A DNA stretch of 64,000 nucleotides from Cyanophora paradoxa CCMP329 (lineage: Eukaryota; Plantae; Glaucophyta): the NCBI GenBank assembly GCA_004431415.1, contig QPMI01000087.1, positions 1-64,000 on the forward strand, in the 5' to 3' direction. The notes under the pieces were generated by a model, which saw only the letters and a program-made list of their open reading frames with translations, was not told the origin of the DNA and made no database searches. The stretch's first letter is position 1. The number at the start of each line of letters is the position of its first letter. Both the position numbers and the translations under genes were made by a program. Shown piece by piece: positions 46,867 through 55,454 of this stretch.

Positions 46867-47577
46867 CTACTGCTTGGGGAAGGGGGGGCCCTGGCACGCC
46901 TCCCCGCAGCGCTCCAGGCAGTACTGCGAGTGCGTTAAGTTAGGGGGGGCGCGCGCGGCGCTCATGGGGCGCGGGGCGGGGCGGGGCGGGGCTTAAGCGG
47001 ACCTTGCGGCTTCGGAATCCCTCCTTCAGCGCGATAGGACTCTTCCTGATATCTGCGGCCGGCAAGTTAAGGCGCGGGGCGCGCGACCGTGGGCGTGGTG
47101 GGGGCCAGCCGCAGGCGCACTCAGCGGGTAGTCGCCGGGGGCGTCGCCGGGCCGGATCTGCGCGTGGACCCCGGCCACAACCGGGGGGCGGTCCCTCAGC
47201 CGCAGAACGCACGGCACGTGCGCAGACACAAGCTTAAGGTGCGTGGAGCGTACGCATGTAGCGACGCATTTCCTGAGGCACGCGTCTCTCTCTTTCGCGA
47301 ACTTCGGGTCGACGTCCGACTTCGAGCCCGCGGCCGCGCTGGCCCTGTCCGCGCCTGCGCCCAAGGCCAGCGACGCCAGGAGCGCCGCCAAGGCTCTCCT
47401 GCCGAGCCCCTGCGCGTCCTGTTTACGTTCGCTGCCGCTTCTGCTGCAGCTTTCGCCGGCGCCGTGCGCGACAATCGGCGCTGGCGCAGCGCCGAGCCCA
47501 GCATCCGCCGGAACCCGCGCTTCGCGCTCCCTGCGCGGTGCATGGGCATGCCAAGGCCAGGTGAACGCCCCGCTCAT
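46867..47577 (-). CDS. Small Cys-motif protein with bipartite plastid plus Tat thylakoid-lumen targeting
   Basis: MSGAF start, GLGRRALAALLASLALGAGADRASA (twin-Arg, H-region, AxA); mature part CLRKCVATC...APGDYPL...IRKSPIALKEGFRSRK|YCLERCGEAC. Confidence 0.75.
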
Positions 47578-47668
47578 CGCCACGCGTTGTCTGCGCCGAG
47601 ATGACTGCAACTGCCGGGCCGGGGTACTCTGAATTCGATCAGCGGTAGCAGCGGCCCCGATCCGAGCG

Positions 47669-50600
47669 ATGCGTCTCCGCCTGCTGCCCCTGCGGAGCAG
47701 CGCAGAGCGCACGGTCGCGGTATGGACCTTGTCGAGCGATGGCTCGGGGGACGGCTGGGTCGGGCTGCTCCCCGCGCTGCAGGAGCTCGAAGCAGAAGGA
47801 GCTGCTGCTGCAGGATTCAGCAGAGCTGACATCGAGCGCCTGCGGGTCGCCGCGGCTGACGTGCTGCTGTGGCTGGAGCTCTCCGTCGGCGCCGCCGGCG
47901 AGTTTGACGTGCGCGCTGCGACGAAGAGGCTGCTCGAGTTCGTTCAAGCGGATCGATCGCGCTGGGAGCGCTGCACGTGAGTCCGAGGCGCCGGCGCATG
48001 GTTGTCAAAATTGCTCACATTGATCGAACAGGGAGGCATGCGACGCGGCGGCGACGCTGCTTCCATTCGCGCCGAAGTCATTCCGCGACTTCAGCAGTGC
48101 GCCTTCCGAGTCCGGCTCGAAGCGCCTCGCGCGACCTGACCGGCCCCGGGCCCTGCGCCGGCGCCGCGCACGCACGCGTCCGCAGTCTACACGCCGCACC
48201 TGAAAGCGGCGACGCGCGGGCTGCTCAAGCTCTCCCCAAGCTCGGCGCTGCAGGTCCCCGCGCGCCCGCTCGGATTCGGCGCCGCCGCCGCCGCCGCCCC
48301 AGAGCCTCAACAGATCCTCTGCGGTGGCCTCGCCCGCATCCTCCGCCTGCCCCTACCCCTCCCCGACGTTCTCCACGCTTTCAAAAACAAGGCGCGCCCC
48401 TACCTTTAGAACCGTTTGGTCTGGGAACCCTCACGCTCGCGCCCCCAGCCGATCTACTACTGCGCCAACCACCTCTCCTTTATCCCCCCCAACGCCGAGG
48501 TCCCCTGGCCCCCCTACGCCCGGTCCGCGCCCCCCCCCCCCGTACCGGGTACCCCCCGCCCAGCTGAAGTAGGGTGTAACCCCTAGGACGCTGGACTACG
48601 AGCTGGAGATCGGCCTCGTGATCGGTCGACCCGTCCCTGCAAACACCCCGCCCGAGGAGGTGCGCGTGTACACGTACCCCCATCCGAGCGAGGAGGGTAC
48701 CGCGTTCGACTCGGGGTACGGCAGGCGGCGAAGGCGGTGGCGGGGCTCGTGCTGCTGAACGATTTCACAGCGCGTGACGTCCAGGCCCGCGAGATCTTCG
48801 AGGGCGCGCCGTACCCCCCTCCTACTCTATTCACCCCCCCCCCTTGCGATCCGAGCCACGGCGCAGGTAACTTCGGGATGGCGAAAACAAAGAACTTCGC
48901 GACCGCAATGGGCTGCGAGGCGCGCCGCCCCGTGCCCCTATACCCTCTCTCGGTCGCCCACGTACCCCCCGCAGGTCGTCACGGCGGACGAGCTGCTCCC
49001 CAGGCTCCACTCGATCGACGGCCTCCGCGCCACAGTCGCGATCGACGGTGCGCGGGACGCGGTACCCCTCCGCCGCCTGCGTCGAAGGGGGGTACGATGC
49101 TCCGCTTTCGGCGCAGGCAAACCGGTGGCGACGTCCTGCACCGCCGAACCCGAGCACAGGTATGCCCGCGAGCCCCAAACTCTTTCTCCTCCTCCGTATC
49201 TGAACCCGCATGTCAAACCCAACCAGCGTGGCGGACATGGTGGGGTACGCGTGTCTCGGGGAGGCGCTGCACCCCGGGGAGGTCCTGGGCACCGGTACCG
49301 TCACCCGCTGCGCCGGCGTCGAGAACGGGTGCGCTCTCTGCCTGTACCCCCTCCCGCATTATTCCGAACGATCCCGACGCGCAGCCGCTACCCAAAGCCC
49401 GGTACGTACGGGAGCAGAAGTACAGCCGCGCAGCGCCCGCACGCGCACGCGCGCGCCCGCCCGGCCGACGCGCCCGCTCAGGCGAGCGGTTGGAGCTCGC
49501 CGTGGAGGGCTTCGCCCTGCCCCTCGCCAACCCCGTCGGGCGGCCCCAGCGGCACGCGGAGCCCGCCGCCAACGGCGCCTGGGACGGCCTCGGTGCGGGC
49601 GGCCTCGGCTTCCCCCCCGCCCCCCCCCCCCCCCCCCCTCTTCTTGGCTCAGGCGCGCACGGGGCAGTGCTCCGGGGCGGCCGCTTCTCCCGCCAGCGCC
49701 GAACCGGCTGCCTCCTCTTCCTCGCCGCCCTCGCCGCCCTCGCCGCCGTCCTGTACCCCCTTCTCGCCGGGCCCTCCAAGGCGCGCTCCTCCCCCGTACC
49801 CCCCTTCTTGCCCCGTCCCCTCTGAGCTCGCGCGCAGATTTCTCCCGTTGCGTGGGTGCCCGATCCGGCCCCGGCGTGGTGGAAGACGAGCCTGCCGGGC
49901 CGCGGCGCCCTCCGCAACGCCAGTGCGGCACCCCGCGCCTTGTCCGCGCGCGTGACTCACGCGATCGCGTACCCCCGCCCGCCAGCGATTCTGTTCAGTG
50001 GGGAGCTGAACGGCCCTGAGAGCTTCGCGTTCGACTCCGCGGGGCGCCTCTACGCTTCCCTGTGGGGTACGCGACGCTTCAATCTTCTTCCCGTGTCTTC
50101 ATGCCAACCGGTACCCCCCGCGCAGACGGACGCGTGGTGCGAACGCGAGAGCCATGGAGGGACCCCACAGAATCGCGTACCCCCATCGACTTCGAAGACT
50201 TCATACCCGCGGGGGCGCTCAACCCGCGAGGGCCCGACCCCCGCTGCGGGCCCGGGGTACTCTCCCACGAGGAGGTCGGAACCGTACCCCTCCCCCTCCT
50301 CCGCGTCCCCGTCTGATATCCCCCCCCCCAGGAGTGCGGGCGGCCGCTGGGCCTGCACATGACGCGGGGGGGTACCCTCATTCTCTGCGACGCCTACTTC
50401 GGCCTCGTCTCCGGTGCGCCCTGTACCCCCCCTCCACACCGGTGCCGCATCCCCCTGACCCCCCCCCCCTCCCAAGTTTCTGCGGAGGGGCGGGTCGAGT
50501 GGCTGGCGTCGGAGGCGGGCGGGCGTCCCATCGTGTTCGCCAACCAGGTCCGAGGGCGGGGGCGGGGGGGGTCGGGCCGGGCCGGGCCGGTCCGGGGAGA

Positions 50601-52017
50601 TCTGGACGGCTGGAGAATGTATTTGGCGGCAACGAGCGGCTAAGTGCCGGGCGGGCGGGCGGGCGGGCGGGCGGTGCTCGGGGAGCGTCGCAAACTTTCG
50701 TTCGCTCGTTTGCCTGAGCCGACGAACGTTCCCCCGGGCAGCCGGCGGTGGACGAGGAGGCCGGCGTCGTCTACTTCGCCGACAGGTGCCCCCCCCCCCC
50801 CCCCCCCGCCTCGAAAGGAGAGAGAGAGAAAGAGGAGCCCACTGCCCCCCGCCCCCCCCTCCCCCGGGCTCTTGATCTCCTCCCTCGCCGGAGAAGGAGA
50901 AGAAGAGCAGAGCCGGCGCCTTCGCAACTCTCCCAACTCTCCTAACTCTCCCGACTCGCCCCCGGGCAGCTCGGGGCGGTCGCGGCGGCGGGAGGTCGTC
51001 CTCCTCGTCCTCGAGAGCGCCTGCGACGGCCGCCTCCTCCGCTACGACATCTCCAAGCGGTCCGCCGGCGCCCCCCGCTCGGAGAGGAGATCTTTTAGAT
51101 CCAGGAGAGGAGAGCGCCGAGCCGCGGCTAACATGCCCGCGCCGGCCTCTCCCGCTTCGCTTCCCTGAAGCTTCCCTTCGGGGCGCTCCCTAGGCCTATC
51201 CCCTCTCTCTCCTCCTTCCTTCCCGGGGGGAGGGACCCTGCTCTCTCCTCGTGGCTGGCTCCCTTCCCCCCTCCTTCCCTCCTCCTGCTGCCCGCCCCCG
51301 ACCTTAACCCAGTTCTTTTCCGCGCTTCTTTCTCGCTCTCTTTCTGACGGGCGGGGTCCCGCTCGCAGGGAGGCGTCGGTGCTGGCGGAGGGCCTCTGCT
51401 TCCCCAACGGCCTCCTCCTCTCCCCGGACCGCCGCACCCTCGTCGTGCGCCCTGCAGGAACAGGGGGGGGAGGGGGGGGGGGGGGGGGGGGGAAGCCTTC
51501 GGGGACCTAGTTGGGGAGGGGGGTTCTTCTGCAAGTCCCCCGCCCGCGGCCGCAGCTAGCCCAGCTCAACTTAGCCGCGCGCCCTCCTCACCGCACCGCA
51601 CCGCACCGCACCGCGCAGGTGGCGGAGACGACGCGGATGCGGCTGCGCGCCCTCGACGCGGCGACCGGCCGCCCCCTCGGGCCCGAGACACCGGGCGCCC
51701 GCCTCTCCGTCCCCTGCATGCCGGCGCGCCCGCCCCGCCCCGCCCCGCGGCGCCGCCTTTAGAGAGCTTATCCTCCCGGCGGCAGGACAACCTCGCGTGG
51801 CTGCCGCCCCGCAACGCGAGCGGCGCCGGCGCCGGCGGCCCGAGCTTCCTCGTCGGCTGCGCCAACCAGTACGGGCTGAAGTTCTCCCTGCCCCCCGCCA
51901 TCGCCGGGGTGCCCCCCCTCTGCTTCTCGACTTCCGTATCCCTTCTGACATCGTACCCGGCAGTACCCCGGCCTCCGCAAAGTCGTCGCCTCCCTCATAC
52001 CCCAGGCGAGCCTTCCC

Positions 52018-52048
<31 letters not shown>

Positions 52049-52443
52049 ACACACACGCACGCACACGCCCTTCTTCTCCGCCCCGTCCGCCCTTCCAAGC
52101 TCATCGCAACGCGGTTCCCCAGGACCTCATCGCCCGGTTCATCCCCCCCTACGGCGTCGTGCTGGAGGTGGGGTACAGCGAGGACCGGGGCGCGGGGGCG
52201 CCGCTCCTGACGCTGCGGCGGGCGCTGACGGACGCGCGGGGCGGCGTGGCGCACGTGAGCGAGGCGGCCGCCACGCCCGAGGGCGGCCTCCTCCTCGGCT
52301 CCTACCGGTCCCCCCGCCTCGCCCGCCCCCCGTCCCGCCCGCCCGCCCTCACGCGGCCCCGCTCGCGGCGTAGGAACGACCACGCGGCGTACCTGTCCAA
52401 GGCCGCCCTCGACGCCGCGCTGGGCCTGGGCCCTGGGGCCTGA
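47669..52443 (+). CDS. Apparent fusion gene: fumarylacetoacetate-hydrolase-family domain + TM helix + strictosidine-synthase-like (APMAP/SSL) beta-propeller
   Basis: FAH: LLPFAPKSFRDF, PIYYCANHLSF, LDYELEIG, NDFTARDVQ, AKTKNF, PGEVLGTGT. TM: CLLFLAALAALAAVLYPLL. SSL: GPESFAFD, CGRPLGL, DAYFGL, FAN, YFADS, GRLLRYD, FPNGL, VAET, DNL, LLLGSY. No stop or Met between the domains. Confidence 0.8.
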
Positions 52444-52752
52444 TCGTCGTGTGAGATTCATATTGTTGAATTCGAACGGGCGGGTCGGCGTCCTATCCGA
52501 CTCGATGAAGCATGCGCGTGTGCAGAACATGTACATGTAGATACGCACAATGGCAACAAATGAAACAGGGGAGAAAAAGATAAAAGCTACCCTGCAGTTG
52601 ATAAACGAACTAAAGTCGAGCCGTACAGGCAACCATACTATTACTAGTACTGTACGTTCTTGAGCTAGCTGTATTGGGCGCGTGCTGAAGCTTATAATTA
52701 CTAAGTTAATTGCATAAGCAATTTGTAATACGAGTCAACTAAACATGTACAG

Positions 52753-55043
52753 CTAGATCGCGGCGCCGGCACACTCGGCGATGGTGAAGCCGATGTCGAG
52801 GCAGCACTTCGTGCTAACGTCGACCTCCGCCTGCTGAGGGGCGATGCGCTGCTCGAGGCTGTTCTTGATGCTCTCCTGGCTCATGTGCCGGATCGCGCCG
52901 ACGAGCATGAAGAGGCCGTCCGCGGCGGTCGAAAGCGCCGTCAGAAGTTTGATGCCCTCCGCAGGGGTGCACGTGCGCAAGTTGGTTTCGTTGTCCAACT
53001 CGCAAGTTTCTGTGCCGCTGGCTTGCATGACGAGCCCCACGACTTTGATCACGAAGCACGTCACCGTGAAGATGTAAATGTTCTAAAAGACACGAATTCG
53101 AAGTCGAAGTCAACGAAACGCGAGAGCGCAGAAAACTACGTATACACGCGCGCGCACGAAGATTTCGCTGTAGTGCATGTTCTTCTTGTAGCGCGTGGGG
53201 ATGTCCAGCATTTTGCTCTTTAGAACTTTGGAGGCGATGTAGAGCTTGTAGAAGGGCGTGAGGATGCTGAGCTTGTGGGGGAACTTGCACCAGCACGATT
53301 TCTCCCCGCAGCACGAGGGGCAGCAACACCTGAACGCGCGCGGCCGGCTCTTATCAGGCGAAGTCGTTAAATAAAGCGATAGACGGTCAAGGACATCTAG
53401 ACCTCGATATCAACAGTCGAGGTTACAAAACCAATGGGATTTAAATTTAGCGGATACTTGCCAAGTTGGCTAGGCCAATATAGGGGATTCATATTTAGAT
53501 TGAGCGATCGCGATTGCGATGTGAATCCGGATCCGCACGCATGCGCACTTGCCCTTGTTGGAGACACAGCGGAAAACAGCCCAGATGATGACGTAGCATG
53601 CGGGGAGCAGGGGGGCCAGGAGCACCGCCCTGCCGACGCCGAGGGCGTGCTCGTACGCGTCCAAAACGGTCAAGACGCCGGCTGCGCATGCGCAAACCGC
53701 CTCACACACTATAATATACCGGTGCTCGCGCTCTTTATTATAAAGCATAGCTGTATAGCTCTAATCTTATTCATAATCTTTGAGTGTTGTAATTAGACAT
53801 GTACGGCTTGAAAAAATGTATGTTGGGGGCGCACCGATGGACGAGAAGTCGAGGAACATCGAGACCCAGGCCGCGAAACGGATGAGACACAGCTTGTTAT
53901 CCCGAATGATGAGCAGCTTAATATCAGCGGCTGCGAAGAAAATGCGGAATTGATTAGACATTGAATGCGCGCGAGCGCATGCGCAGTGGTTGCAGCCAGA
54001 TCTAGAATCTAGATCTTGCAATAGGTCTTCAGAATAAACAATCGCAAGGGCGTTATTTATATTGCACGCACGCGTGGTCCAGTTGCAGCAGCACGCGCAG
54101 CATGCGTCGCCGTTATCGGCCGCGGGCGCCTGCTCGGACTCATTCTGCGCATACTTTATAGTCAGTACTAGTTGCGTGAGACACAGGATCCCGGATGAGC
54201 CCAGGCCTGGGAAAGAACCTTGCTCGGTTGCGCTGGCCATGGAGCGTGCTGCACGTTCACGTTGACATCCGAGGGCTGCACGTACCCTGCAGGTGGCTGC
54301 CGAAGCAATTGCGAACAGGCATGAGGATTCGAGCCTTCGAATTCGAGCGGGCTCGAAAGCTAGACAGGCCTAGGCCTAGGGTCGGGCTATTGCTAGCGCT
54401 CACATAGAAGTGCGGTGCCTGCGGATGCGGATGCGGGTGCTGATTCATGTACTGCGGTGGGTGCTGGCCATGGTACGCGTACGGCCCCGCGGGCGACTGC
54501 GCATGCGGACGCAGGCTACCGTGAGAACGAGAAGGAAAAGGCTCCGTGCACGCGGCCAGGCAAGCATATGCTTTGATCGGTATACGTAGCTATATATAGC
54601 TGCAGATCGCCTAGCACAAATATATATAATGCAATGCGCATGCGCGAGGCACAAACCATTTGCATCTGTGGGTGCCCCTGGAACCCGTACGCGTGCGGTG
54701 GCGGCGGTGGCATGTACATTTGGACAGGAGGAGGTGAGAACCCCGGAGCGCCGGGCTGCCAGACAGGCGGCTTCGTCAGTTACAGAAGTATACGCGCACG
54801 AATGCATATGCGCAGCGGTCGGACAAACAGATCTAGACGGCCGCGGGAGCTCACTTTGTCATACATGTACACAGGACCCTGCGACGCGTACGGGGCATGA
54901 AGCTCTTGCAATTGGCCGTCTTTGCTTTCTCTGCCGTTTTCGTTGCCGTAGTCCTTCGAGCTCTCATGATCATGATCGCTCGCATTCTCGTCTTCATCGT
55001 GCTCCGGATCCGTCAACTTGTTGTCCTCTCCAGCGTCAGCCAT
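52753..55043 (-). CDS. Unknown multi-exon, multipass membrane protein with acidic and Pro/His/Tyr-rich N-terminus and Cys clusters
   Basis: MADAGEDNKL..., MPPPPPHAYG, DACCACCCNW, several hydrophobic exons (IIVCEAVCACAAGVLTVL; VLLAPLLPACYVIIWAVF; IYIFTVTCFVIKVVGLVM), CCCPSCCGEKSCWC. Confidence 0.65.
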
Positions 55044-55454
55044 TCCTGTACGTATGCGTAGCTTGATCTGGGAGCCTGCAGCTGGCAGACTAGCCTAGCA
55101 GCTGCTAAGCGATCGCCTCGAGCGATCGCGAGCGAGCTAAAACTCTGTATACGTAGCAGGCTGGGCCTGGGAGACGGGGGCTGATGCCGAGGAGACTCTG
55201 AGTCTCAGAGCAAGATACAGGTGCAGGCGAATTCCCGCTGCAAGCAAAGTCTGCAACTCTAGCTCTTACTAAGTTACGTATACACTGCTATACCGTAGTA
55301 CAGTATACTCGACAGCTTACAAGTTAAGCTACAAGATAGTTGAAGATAGTCTCGGCTGTCAATGTCGCGAGTCTCGCGACTTCTTTAAATTTTGCTGCGC
55401 GCGCGGCGGCCGCGGCCTGCCAGGCTGGCCAGGCTGGCCGGCGGGCCTGCGGAC

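Follow-up and report, generated by a model that had tools for sequence, protein, structure and literature searches.

In the glaucophyte alga Cyanophora paradoxa CCMP329, an enzyme of the fumarylacetoacetate hydrolase (FAH) family and a strictosidine synthase-like (SSL) propeller are encoded by one nuclear gene. The gene lies on the forward strand of the window analyzed here, which comprises the first 64,000 nucleotides of contig QPMI01000087.1 (assembly GCA_004431415.1), and all coordinates given below are those of the window. We found that the locus is transcribed and spliced into one mRNA carrying a single open reading frame (ORF) of 819 amino acids (aa). The reading that we favor, and regard as reasonably probable, is that of a one-gene FAH-helix-SSL fusion with a type II membrane anchor and two linked hydrolase-type chemistries. 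What is new is an undescribed domain arrangement of two known enzyme families, for which a bacterial counterpart exists. The prediction of the Cyanophora protein is itself already present in EukProt (EP00741_Cyanophora_paradoxa_P025171, tig00000344_g24296.t1, 838 aa; here P0001), so the fusion is not unrecorded; a preliminary description of this DNA had known of no described protein with this architecture.

Spliced contigs from three runs of two studies were mapped on 47300-52800, along with the contigs of one 2012 run (X12). Two of the spliced contigs span the locus from end to end, namely, X1 rec2 (2605 nucleotides [nt], 47642-52561) and X2 rec13 (2607 nt, 47648-52569), and a third, X5 rec15, runs from 47652 to past 50272. 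X12, which was taken as DNA, is colinear with the genome and unspliced over 47300-49558, showing none of the intron-removing joints. Runs had initially been taken as RNA by guess, about one-third of the locus words being present in seven runs and 56-76% in three 2012 runs; X1, X2, and X5 are read as RNA because introns are removed precisely in them, in contrast to the colinear X12. The exon chain was then rebuilt in record coordinates from the listed contig joints, with 16 letters placed between one joint pair. It consists of 27 exons and 26 introns (20 GT-AG and 6 GC-AG) in a transcribed unit at 47642..52561, and the exons add up to 2605 nt, exactly as long as the X1 contig. In the spliced mRNA, one ORF extends from the ATG at 47669 to the TGA at 52441-52443 (coding sequence, 47669..52443). 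The 5′ leader of 27 nt contains no ATG, an in-frame TGA lies at 47630, upstream of the 5′ end of the transcript, and the 3′ untranslated region ends near 52561-52569, where the contigs end.

Evidence from the junction of the two halves bears on whether they belong to one gene. A three-frame reading showed that the genomic frame is open over 48587-49822, across the FAH/SSL junction. In the RNA contigs (X2 rec13 and X5 rec15), 49481-49591 is directly joined to 49667-49778, by which intron 13 (49593..49667, 75 nt, GT-AG) is removed. The length of this intron is a multiple of three, and a long C run sits inside it, so that an error in the run length cannot shift the frame of the mRNA. Intron 14 (49781..49837), which follows, is a GC-AG intron with the donor GCGCGC, and it is spliced both in the contigs and in the rebuilt model. 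The preliminary description had proposed a phase-compatible intron, a GC-AG intron at 49781, and a frame running on from the last FAH strand into a basic stretch and a helix (49679-49765). All three were borne out, with a small correction of the acceptor of the first intron to 49667, and there is neither a stop nor an ATG between the strand and the helix. Its reading of the exons was likewise correct in the coordinates, but it had missed a 17-nt micro-exon (49385..49401, encoding RYPKP) inside the FAH domain, which is seen as 16 letters within the joint 49328>49481 in both X1 and X2 and for which the splicing in the contigs is correct.

It is conceivable that two neighboring genes, one for the FAH and one for the SSL protein, look like one through read-through or because a de Bruijn assembler joined their overlapping transcripts, their real products being separate. 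The absence of any stop between the halves, in the genome and in the mRNA alike, speaks against such a merger, as do the methionines of the 819-aa protein. These occur only at residues 1, 253, 263, 309, 534, 652, and 679; with none between residues 309 and 534, the SSL half, together with the helix, has no start codon of its own. In addition, introns 13 and 14 lie within the junction and are both spliced in frame in all three runs, and three contigs from two studies agree with the public prediction. The merger would draw support from the nature of the data, which are assembled contigs (a contig across two genes shows no single transcript), and from eukaryote-like FAH relatives that end just after a membrane anchor, so that a stop-less junction could be recent. 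On balance, we consider it very improbable, and the proposal of one gene reaching from FAH to SSL stands on the spliced contigs, the single mRNA, and its ORF.

The rebuilt coding sequence is identical to that of P0001 except for one extra exon of 57 nt in the public model (51195..51251), which adds 19 residues to the 819-aa protein. This exon has no support from the RNA contigs, and the full length of X1 rec2 is accounted for by the other exons. It falls in a gap of the alignments with bacterial proteins, plant proteins, and rice TGW6, and it has a predicted local distance difference test (pLDDT) score of 54. These data indicated that the public gene model is wrong at this one exon, which should be dropped. 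A low-depth unspliced contig, X1 rec3 (51121-51335), covers the exon. Database, fold, and family searches of the full-length protein used P0001 as the query, and the rebuilt model was searched exon by exon; the joined 819-aa model was used for the ORF check, local BLAST, and trees only. A homologue search with the 412-aa stop-free genomic frame (48587-49822) gave no match, the query being swamped by translated intron words, and an ESM Atlas look-up of P0001 gave no usable match.

As judged by alignment and fold, the FAH half is a complete enzyme of the FAH superfamily and belongs to the bacterial type of roughly 340 aa, with a lid and a catalytic barrel. The enzyme covers residues 1 to 366, and its last strand, GERLELAVEGFALPLANPVG, is encoded at 49482-49540. 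Exon 1 (47669..47976) encodes the N-terminal lid domain (residues 1 to 102), which aligns from residue 1 with the bacterial homologue P0008 and with the actinobacterial fusions described below. In the AlphaFold2 (AF2) model, the lid has pLDDT values of 86-98, except for one 10-residue block at 80. The FAA_hydrolase catalytic domain (PF01557) occupies residues 172 to 356 (exons 4-13, 48386..49516), where P0001 scored 125.5 bits against a cutoff of 23.9 (3e-36), and exon-wise matches to the family are colinear (profile positions 58-78, 80-102, and 159-183). By BLAST, residues 1 to 366 match residues 1 to 337 of P0008 at 40% identity. Since the FAH half is in register with bacterial homologues from residue 1, it is a whole enzyme with its lid and no targeting extension; exon 1 encodes no signal or transit peptide, and the protein starts with MRL in the manner of the bacterial fusions.

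The preliminary description had credited both halves with likely metal or catalytic residues, and the conserved polar positions are indeed kept in the alignments of both. For the FAH half, the motifs retained are RDF...H129, DYELE (48594-48608), ND (48758-48763), ARDVQ, AKTK, GTGT (49288-49299), and E337, and the polar residues are D122, H129, E203, E205, D235, R239, Q242, K255 (48884-48886), and E337, so that the acidic metal site, the oxyanion residues (Arg, Gln, and Lys), and the His of the lid are all retained. In FAHD1, HpcE, and a fumarylacetoacetase, the aligned counterparts of six of these positions (E203, E205, D235, R239, Q242, and K255) are the ELE, (N)D, ARD.Q, and K motifs; most of the six are invariant in alignment A1. 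We take residues of the E203/E205/D235 type to be divalent-metal ligands, as in the structures of FAH and FAHD1. The acidic metal site (ELE...ND), the ARD.Q and K motifs, and TGT are common to the algal FAH half and the superfamily members fumarylacetoacetase, FAHD1, HpcE/HpaG, YisK, and L-2,4-diketo-3-deoxyrhamnonate hydrolase. A Foldseek search with the FAH half returned YisK, L-2,4-diketo-3-deoxyrhamnonate hydrolase, FAH, and HpcE (E values of 1e-16 to 1e-13, TMt of 0.60-0.80), the first two sharing the fold at a TMt of 0.71-0.80. The half is not a member of the fumarylacetoacetase equivalog TIGR01266 (46.3 bits versus a cutoff of 375.3) or of the 2,4-didehydro-3-deoxy-L-rhamnonate hydrolase family NF053535, its best NCBIfam match (48 bits versus a cutoff of 500). 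Unlike these named enzymes, it falls in the tree into a separate, uncharacterized clade of roughly 340-aa proteins.

The SSL half (residues 420 to 819, exons 15-27, 49838..52440) is an SSL/APMAP-like six-bladed propeller according to Pfam, PDB matches, fold, and alignment A2. Pfam families were found above their curated cutoffs on P0001, with Str_synth (PF03088) at 54.8 bits versus 25 (1e-14), SSL_N (PF20067) at 34.7 bits versus 18.9 (2e-8), and SGL at 27.3 bits versus 26.3 (3e-6) in addition to FAA_hydrolase, and the exon-wise SSL_N and Str_synth matches are colinear. Motif sites are GPE (50012-50020), Cys515 (50245-50247), Cys526 (50335-50337), N574 (50542-50544), FPNG (51400-51411), PDN (51721-51791, split by an intron), and the C-terminal L.LGS (about 52291-52302). 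The last of these aligns with bacterial and plant SSLs in A2, indicating that the propeller is complete. The closest sequence match in PDB is rice TGW6 (8kg3, 1e-20), followed by strictosidine synthases, and Foldseek likewise returned strictosidine synthase and TGW6 (TMt of 0.74-0.77 over about 390 columns).

Four positions of the SSL half, E459, N574, N633, and D681/N682, are invariant in A2 across the alga, plants, and bacteria. Their columns are presumably Ca ligands, by analogy with PON1, DFPase, and SMP30, and the E/N/N/D pattern points to the hydrolase branch of the family. The half shares with strictosidine synthase (STR1, 2fp8) the fold, the Pfam family, and both conserved cysteines, but this does not imply a Pictet-Spenglerase function for the algal protein. 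The residues of that activity we take to be Glu309, together with Tyr151 and His307, and the phmmer alignments to STR1 end near STR1 residue 205, short of the catalytic Glu309 region. The Cys pair C515/C526 around CGRPLG, which forms a disulfide in STR1, aligns with both cysteines of 2fp8 and approximately with those of TGW6, and it is present in the plant SSL P0007 but absent from all aligned bacterial fusions (A2). TGW6 (Os06g0623700) is the best solved match by sequence and among the best by fold (TMt of 0.74), and it shares GPE, CGRPLG, and the Cys pair. It differs from the SSL half in being a stand-alone plant protein of about 22-30% identity, and there is no hint of an auxin-conjugate activity of the algal protein. 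Since a passage of PMC7084539, citing Ishimaru et al. 2013, reports this closest solved SSL as a hydrolase of indole-3-acetic acid-glucose, there is a hydrolase precedent for the SSL half.

One of the two halves might nevertheless be catalytically dead and serve the other by binding, regulation, or anchoring. No activity is known for many SSL proteins, and the C-terminal third of the SSL half is divergent, with no Pfam match and with lower pLDDT values (51-88). The frame of this part (51949-52440) matched only P0001, its own product, and two low-complexity chance sequences among 1.84 billion representative proteins, and it had no match in PDB. We see only a slim chance of a dead half, given that all conserved polar positions are kept in both the FAH and the SSL halves, several of them being invariant between alga and bacteria.

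Between the two enzymes lies a linker (residues 367 to 392, 49547..49699, pLDDT of <50), which is cut by intron 13 and ends in RGGRFSRQRR, so that five arginines directly precede a hydrophobic helix (residues 396 to 414, 49709..49765). The mean hydropathy of the helix is 2.52 over 19 residues, the sole Kyte-Doolittle peak of ≥1.5 in the protein. AF2 prediction of P0001 from a 34-row alignment (mean pLDDT of 81) gave both halves folded and residues 371 to 433 disordered except for a helix at 393 to 414. In human and Drosophila APMAP and in plant SSLs, a helix is likewise followed by an SSL_N plus Str_synth six-bladed propeller. APMAP itself presumably carries GPE, CGRPLG, DSS, FPNG, and PDN; the sequences tested here were P0007, TGW6, and strictosidine synthases. 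The part of APMAP ahead of the helix is just a short cytosolic tail, whereas in Cyanophora a complete FAH-family enzyme of 390 residues takes its place. Detergent, protease, and proximity-labeling assays placed APMAP as a type II protein with its propeller in the endoplasmic reticulum (ER) lumen (bioRxiv 10.1101/2024.01.26.577049).

Membrane anchors also occur in relatives of the FAH half. Each of the FAH-only proteins P0010 (from an MMETSP transcript), P0012, and P0015 terminates in a hydrophobic anchor, some 30 residues long, that immediately follows the FAH domain and aligns with the position of the Cyanophora helix. P0015 and one member of the P0012 cluster sit on compact picoeukaryote-like contigs. 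Such eukaryote-like homologues, cluster members included, belong to the same FAH clade as the Cyanophora protein and have a hydrophobic segment followed by a W..P-rich motif; they differ in that their anchor of about 30 residues has a central Pro-Pro and that they stop 5-40 residues past it, with no SSL part. As judged from the sequences, members of the clade are soluble in bacteria and have a C-terminal anchor in some eukaryotes; fusion to an SSL is seen in one actinobacterial group, and Cyanophora combines anchor and fusion. FAH homologues were also seen on compact, intron-poor, eukaryote-like contigs at L018 780-1952, L019 2318-3103 (labeled marine metagenome), and L020 675-1460. Full-length members of their clusters carry the C-terminal anchor with central Pro-Pro, and the final residues of two of the tails, KKDL and KKQA, are reminiscent of dilysine signals for ER retrieval.

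If the helix serves as a signal anchor, the product would be a type II protein with the FAH domain on the cytosolic face of the ER or another endomembrane and the SSL domain in the lumen or outside the cell. We regard this as the likeliest topology, and a fairly probable one, because the lone helix is flanked by arginines, the N terminus has no targeting extension, the SSL half has the Cys pair and two N-x-S/T sequons (N446 and N690), and APMAP is type II. The proposed orientation matches both parent families, since the anchored FAH relatives would have a cytosolic N terminus and APMAP-type SSLs are type II; the fusion may thus be two membrane-tethered enzymes sharing one helix.

The hydrophobic stretch need not be a membrane span, however. 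It could be a low-complexity Ala/Leu insertion that a (CTCGCCGCC)n repeat gave rise to, or else an anchor of the monotopic or peripheral kind, with both domains on the same side. The helix is largely coded by three copies of the 9-nt unit CTCGCCGCC in tandem (49721-49747), the bacterial fusions have no such segment and simply a shorter, disordered linker, and same-side placement would suit sequential catalysis. The anchors of the eukaryote-like FAH proteins, with their length and central Pro-Pro, could also be hairpins rather than spans. Yet a hydropathy of 2.5 over 19 residues next to five arginines is a strong signature of a span or signal anchor, the secretory-type Cys pair and the N-glycosylation sequons of the SSL half are lacking in the cytoplasmic bacterial forms, and the equivalent helix of APMAP is a proven type II anchor (bioRxiv 10.1101/2024.01.26.577049). 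The same-side arrangement is therefore held to be unlikely, and the type II topology is retained in what follows.

The preliminary description had known of no protein with this architecture, but FAH and SSL domains occur in the same order and in one ORF, with no helix, in many actinobacterial metagenome-assembled genomes (MAGs) and metagenomes. A word search with P0001 yielded P0004 (686 aa) and P0005 (602 aa), metagenome proteins that have its Pfam set and are encoded on intronless, gene-dense contigs with actinobacterial neighbors (Lsr2, BTAD, sigma-70, and AsnC). P0005 is 84% identical to P0004 over the first 521 residues and then diverges (contig L003, 8001-9809); it is probably a damaged copy, either frameshifted or truncated. 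A scan of genomes revealed 14 fusion loci in Streptosporangiaceae, Trebonia, and other Actinomycetota MAGs, with 75-86% identity to P0004. In a metagenome scan with the SSL alignment, the FAH part was found directly upstream at 58 of 80 SSL loci, mostly from soil or peat, and 39 distinct complete loci have FAH and SSL in one ORF (680-711 aa, 59-88% identity, with one apparent outlier of 911 aa). A profile search with A1 returned FAH-only proteins and no further fusions. The bacterial fusions are not described in the searchable literature, in which no paper contains both "fumarylacetoacetate hydrolase" and "strictosidine synthase-like."

P0004 and its kin resemble the Cyanophora protein in the two families, in the arrangement of these along the chain, and in the FAH clade, and they retain the conserved polar residues. 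Identity is 34-46% per half by BLAST and 37% in the full-length alignment A4. Unlike the algal form, the bacterial ones have no introns, no hydrophobic segment, and no Cys pair, and their linker is shorter (20 residues) and disordered; they are presumably cytoplasmic because they carry no signal-type hydrophobic segment. Since the same enzymes are fused in soil actinobacteria, the FAH-SSL pairing is probably functional. The MAG MFD01248.bin.3.64 contains two fusion copies on different contigs (L007 and L009). In one bacterial subclade (L001 892-1881 and 4289-6574; L003 13095-17765), a divergent Xi-type glutathione S-transferase (GST; GST_N_2/GST_C_2, 329 aa) is encoded upstream of the fusion, and a GH2 glycosidase, a TANGO2-domain gene, and a glutamine-synthetase-like (GlnA-like) gene lie downstream. 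Among the 80 metagenome loci, GH2 was found in 11 and GST, either full length or as a remnant, in 7, all of them fused loci.

Did the alga and the bacteria inherit one fusion, or did the two domains come together separately? In the FAH tree, Cyanophora, the bacterial fusions, P0008/P0009, and the anchored eukaryote-like proteins form one clade (100/99), with no resolution inside it. In the maximum-likelihood SSL tree, the fused bacterial SSLs are nested among unfused bacterial ones (86/91), and Cyanophora lies outside, with the plant SSL. The best BLAST match of the algal FAH half is an unfused Calditrichaeota protein (251 bits versus 179-204 for the fusions), and the SSL half scores equally against the plant SSL (110 bits) and the bacterial fusions (106-117 bits). 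Neither half thus has a special affinity for the bacterial fusions by BLAST, which also detected no similarity in the linker.

These results count against the idea that the gene came from a ready-made bacterial FAH-SSL fusion by horizontal transfer and later gained its 26 introns, the helix, and the Cys pair, the last two of which are eukaryote-type features. Such a transfer would account for the domain order and FAH clade common to the alga and the bacterial fusions, a clade that also holds a few unfused proteins. It would also account for the linker and juxta-helix positions shared in A1 (W378, V382, R384, G386, W425, P427, P431, and A432). Further, a clade uniting every fused SSL half was not rejected by an approximately unbiased (AU) test (P = 0.23), and the Cyanophora sequence is on a long branch. 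Taking both sides together, we view the transfer as possible but doubtful, and we lean to an independent fusion in the alga over one shared event, with part of the weight left undecided.

With regard to function, the FAH half may be a C-C hydrolase or decarboxylase that requires a divalent metal and acts on a 2,4-diketo or beta-keto acid, and the SSL half a Ca-dependent esterase or lactonase, both assignments being the weaker part of our proposal. The two chemistries would be linked, as Streptosporangiales-like actinobacteria have an SSL joined, in identical order, to an FAH of this clade. The helix-free bacterial form, residing in one compartment, fits sequential steps of one pathway better than it fits a membrane-split arrangement. 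In the algal form, the intermediate would need to cross the membrane, or else the domains would serve different pools; metabolic coupling across the membrane is speculation.

Several points weigh against the FAH-helix-SSL reading as a whole. Contigs alone neither prove a single molecule nor exclude an extra internal transcription start, and the RNA label of the runs was a guess. No subfamily model reaches its cutoff for the FAH half, so that the substrate is not readable from homology. AF2 gave no confident interdomain packing (predicted template modeling score of 0.61 for the algal and 0.55 for a bacterial fusion) and hence no support for a fixed interface or a substrate channel. The helix is coded by a GC-rich repeat and absent from bacterial fusions, and it could be a lineage-specific low-complexity insertion with no role in the membrane. 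A membrane between the domains is awkward if the activities are sequential, as the helix-free bacterial form suggests. Finally, the bacterial gene neighborhood was rejected as a functional clue, being conserved in one subclade only.

To our knowledge, few physiological substrates of SSL/APMAP proteins have been established, whether in animals, plants, or bacteria, and the roughly 340-aa FAH clade has no characterized member. An expressed algal fusion together with a recurrent ORF in soil actinobacteria therefore offers a testable hint that SSL and FAH chemistries are linked, and the soluble, intronless bacterial version should be easy to express and screen. A bolder version, which we rate as distinctly unlikely, holds that the pairing arose twice: in the glaucophyte from a membrane-anchored FAH and a type II SSL sharing their helix, and in Streptosporangiales-like actinobacteria in a helix-free form. 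If true, it would be a Rosetta-stone link placing orphan APMAP/SSL hydrolases and this FAH clade in a common pathway; for example, an ester or lactone might be opened first and the keto acid so formed then cleaved at a C-C bond, and in the alga a single polypeptide would perform the two steps on opposite faces of an endomembrane. The algal topology, if confirmed, would represent a rare layout in which two enzyme domains of one chain lie across a membrane, and it raises the question of whether and how their activities communicate.

The locus has a GC content of about 0.67-0.81 and many short introns. The RNA contigs have all six GC-AG introns (48392, 48804, 48920, 49781, 51724, and 52006) removed, and the donor is GCGCGC in five of them. 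Half of the 26 introns, 13 short ones (55-69 nt) confined to 48523-50476, contain the motif GTACCCC, often as GGTACCCC, with no fixed spacing to the splice sites. Of the 32 GTAC sites in the gene, 22 fall within introns, and GTACCCC has the look of an element or family common to these introns. The contigs reach a much greater summed depth at 48220-48403, 49692-49875, and 51716-51899, where many odd long-range joints occur. Joints of this kind, such as 48297>49721, were rejected as splicing and attributed to repeat matching, contigs of other transcripts sharing the GCC-rich simple repeats. GC content, about 0.7-0.8 up to the stop codon, drops right after it to 0.46-0.6 and remains at a low level over some 3 kb (52400-55400). 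On the other side of the gene, a transcript contig of the neighboring gene ends at 47608-47621, only about 20-45 nt before the 5′ end of the fusion mRNA (47642-47652), indicating a very short spacer between the two transcription units.

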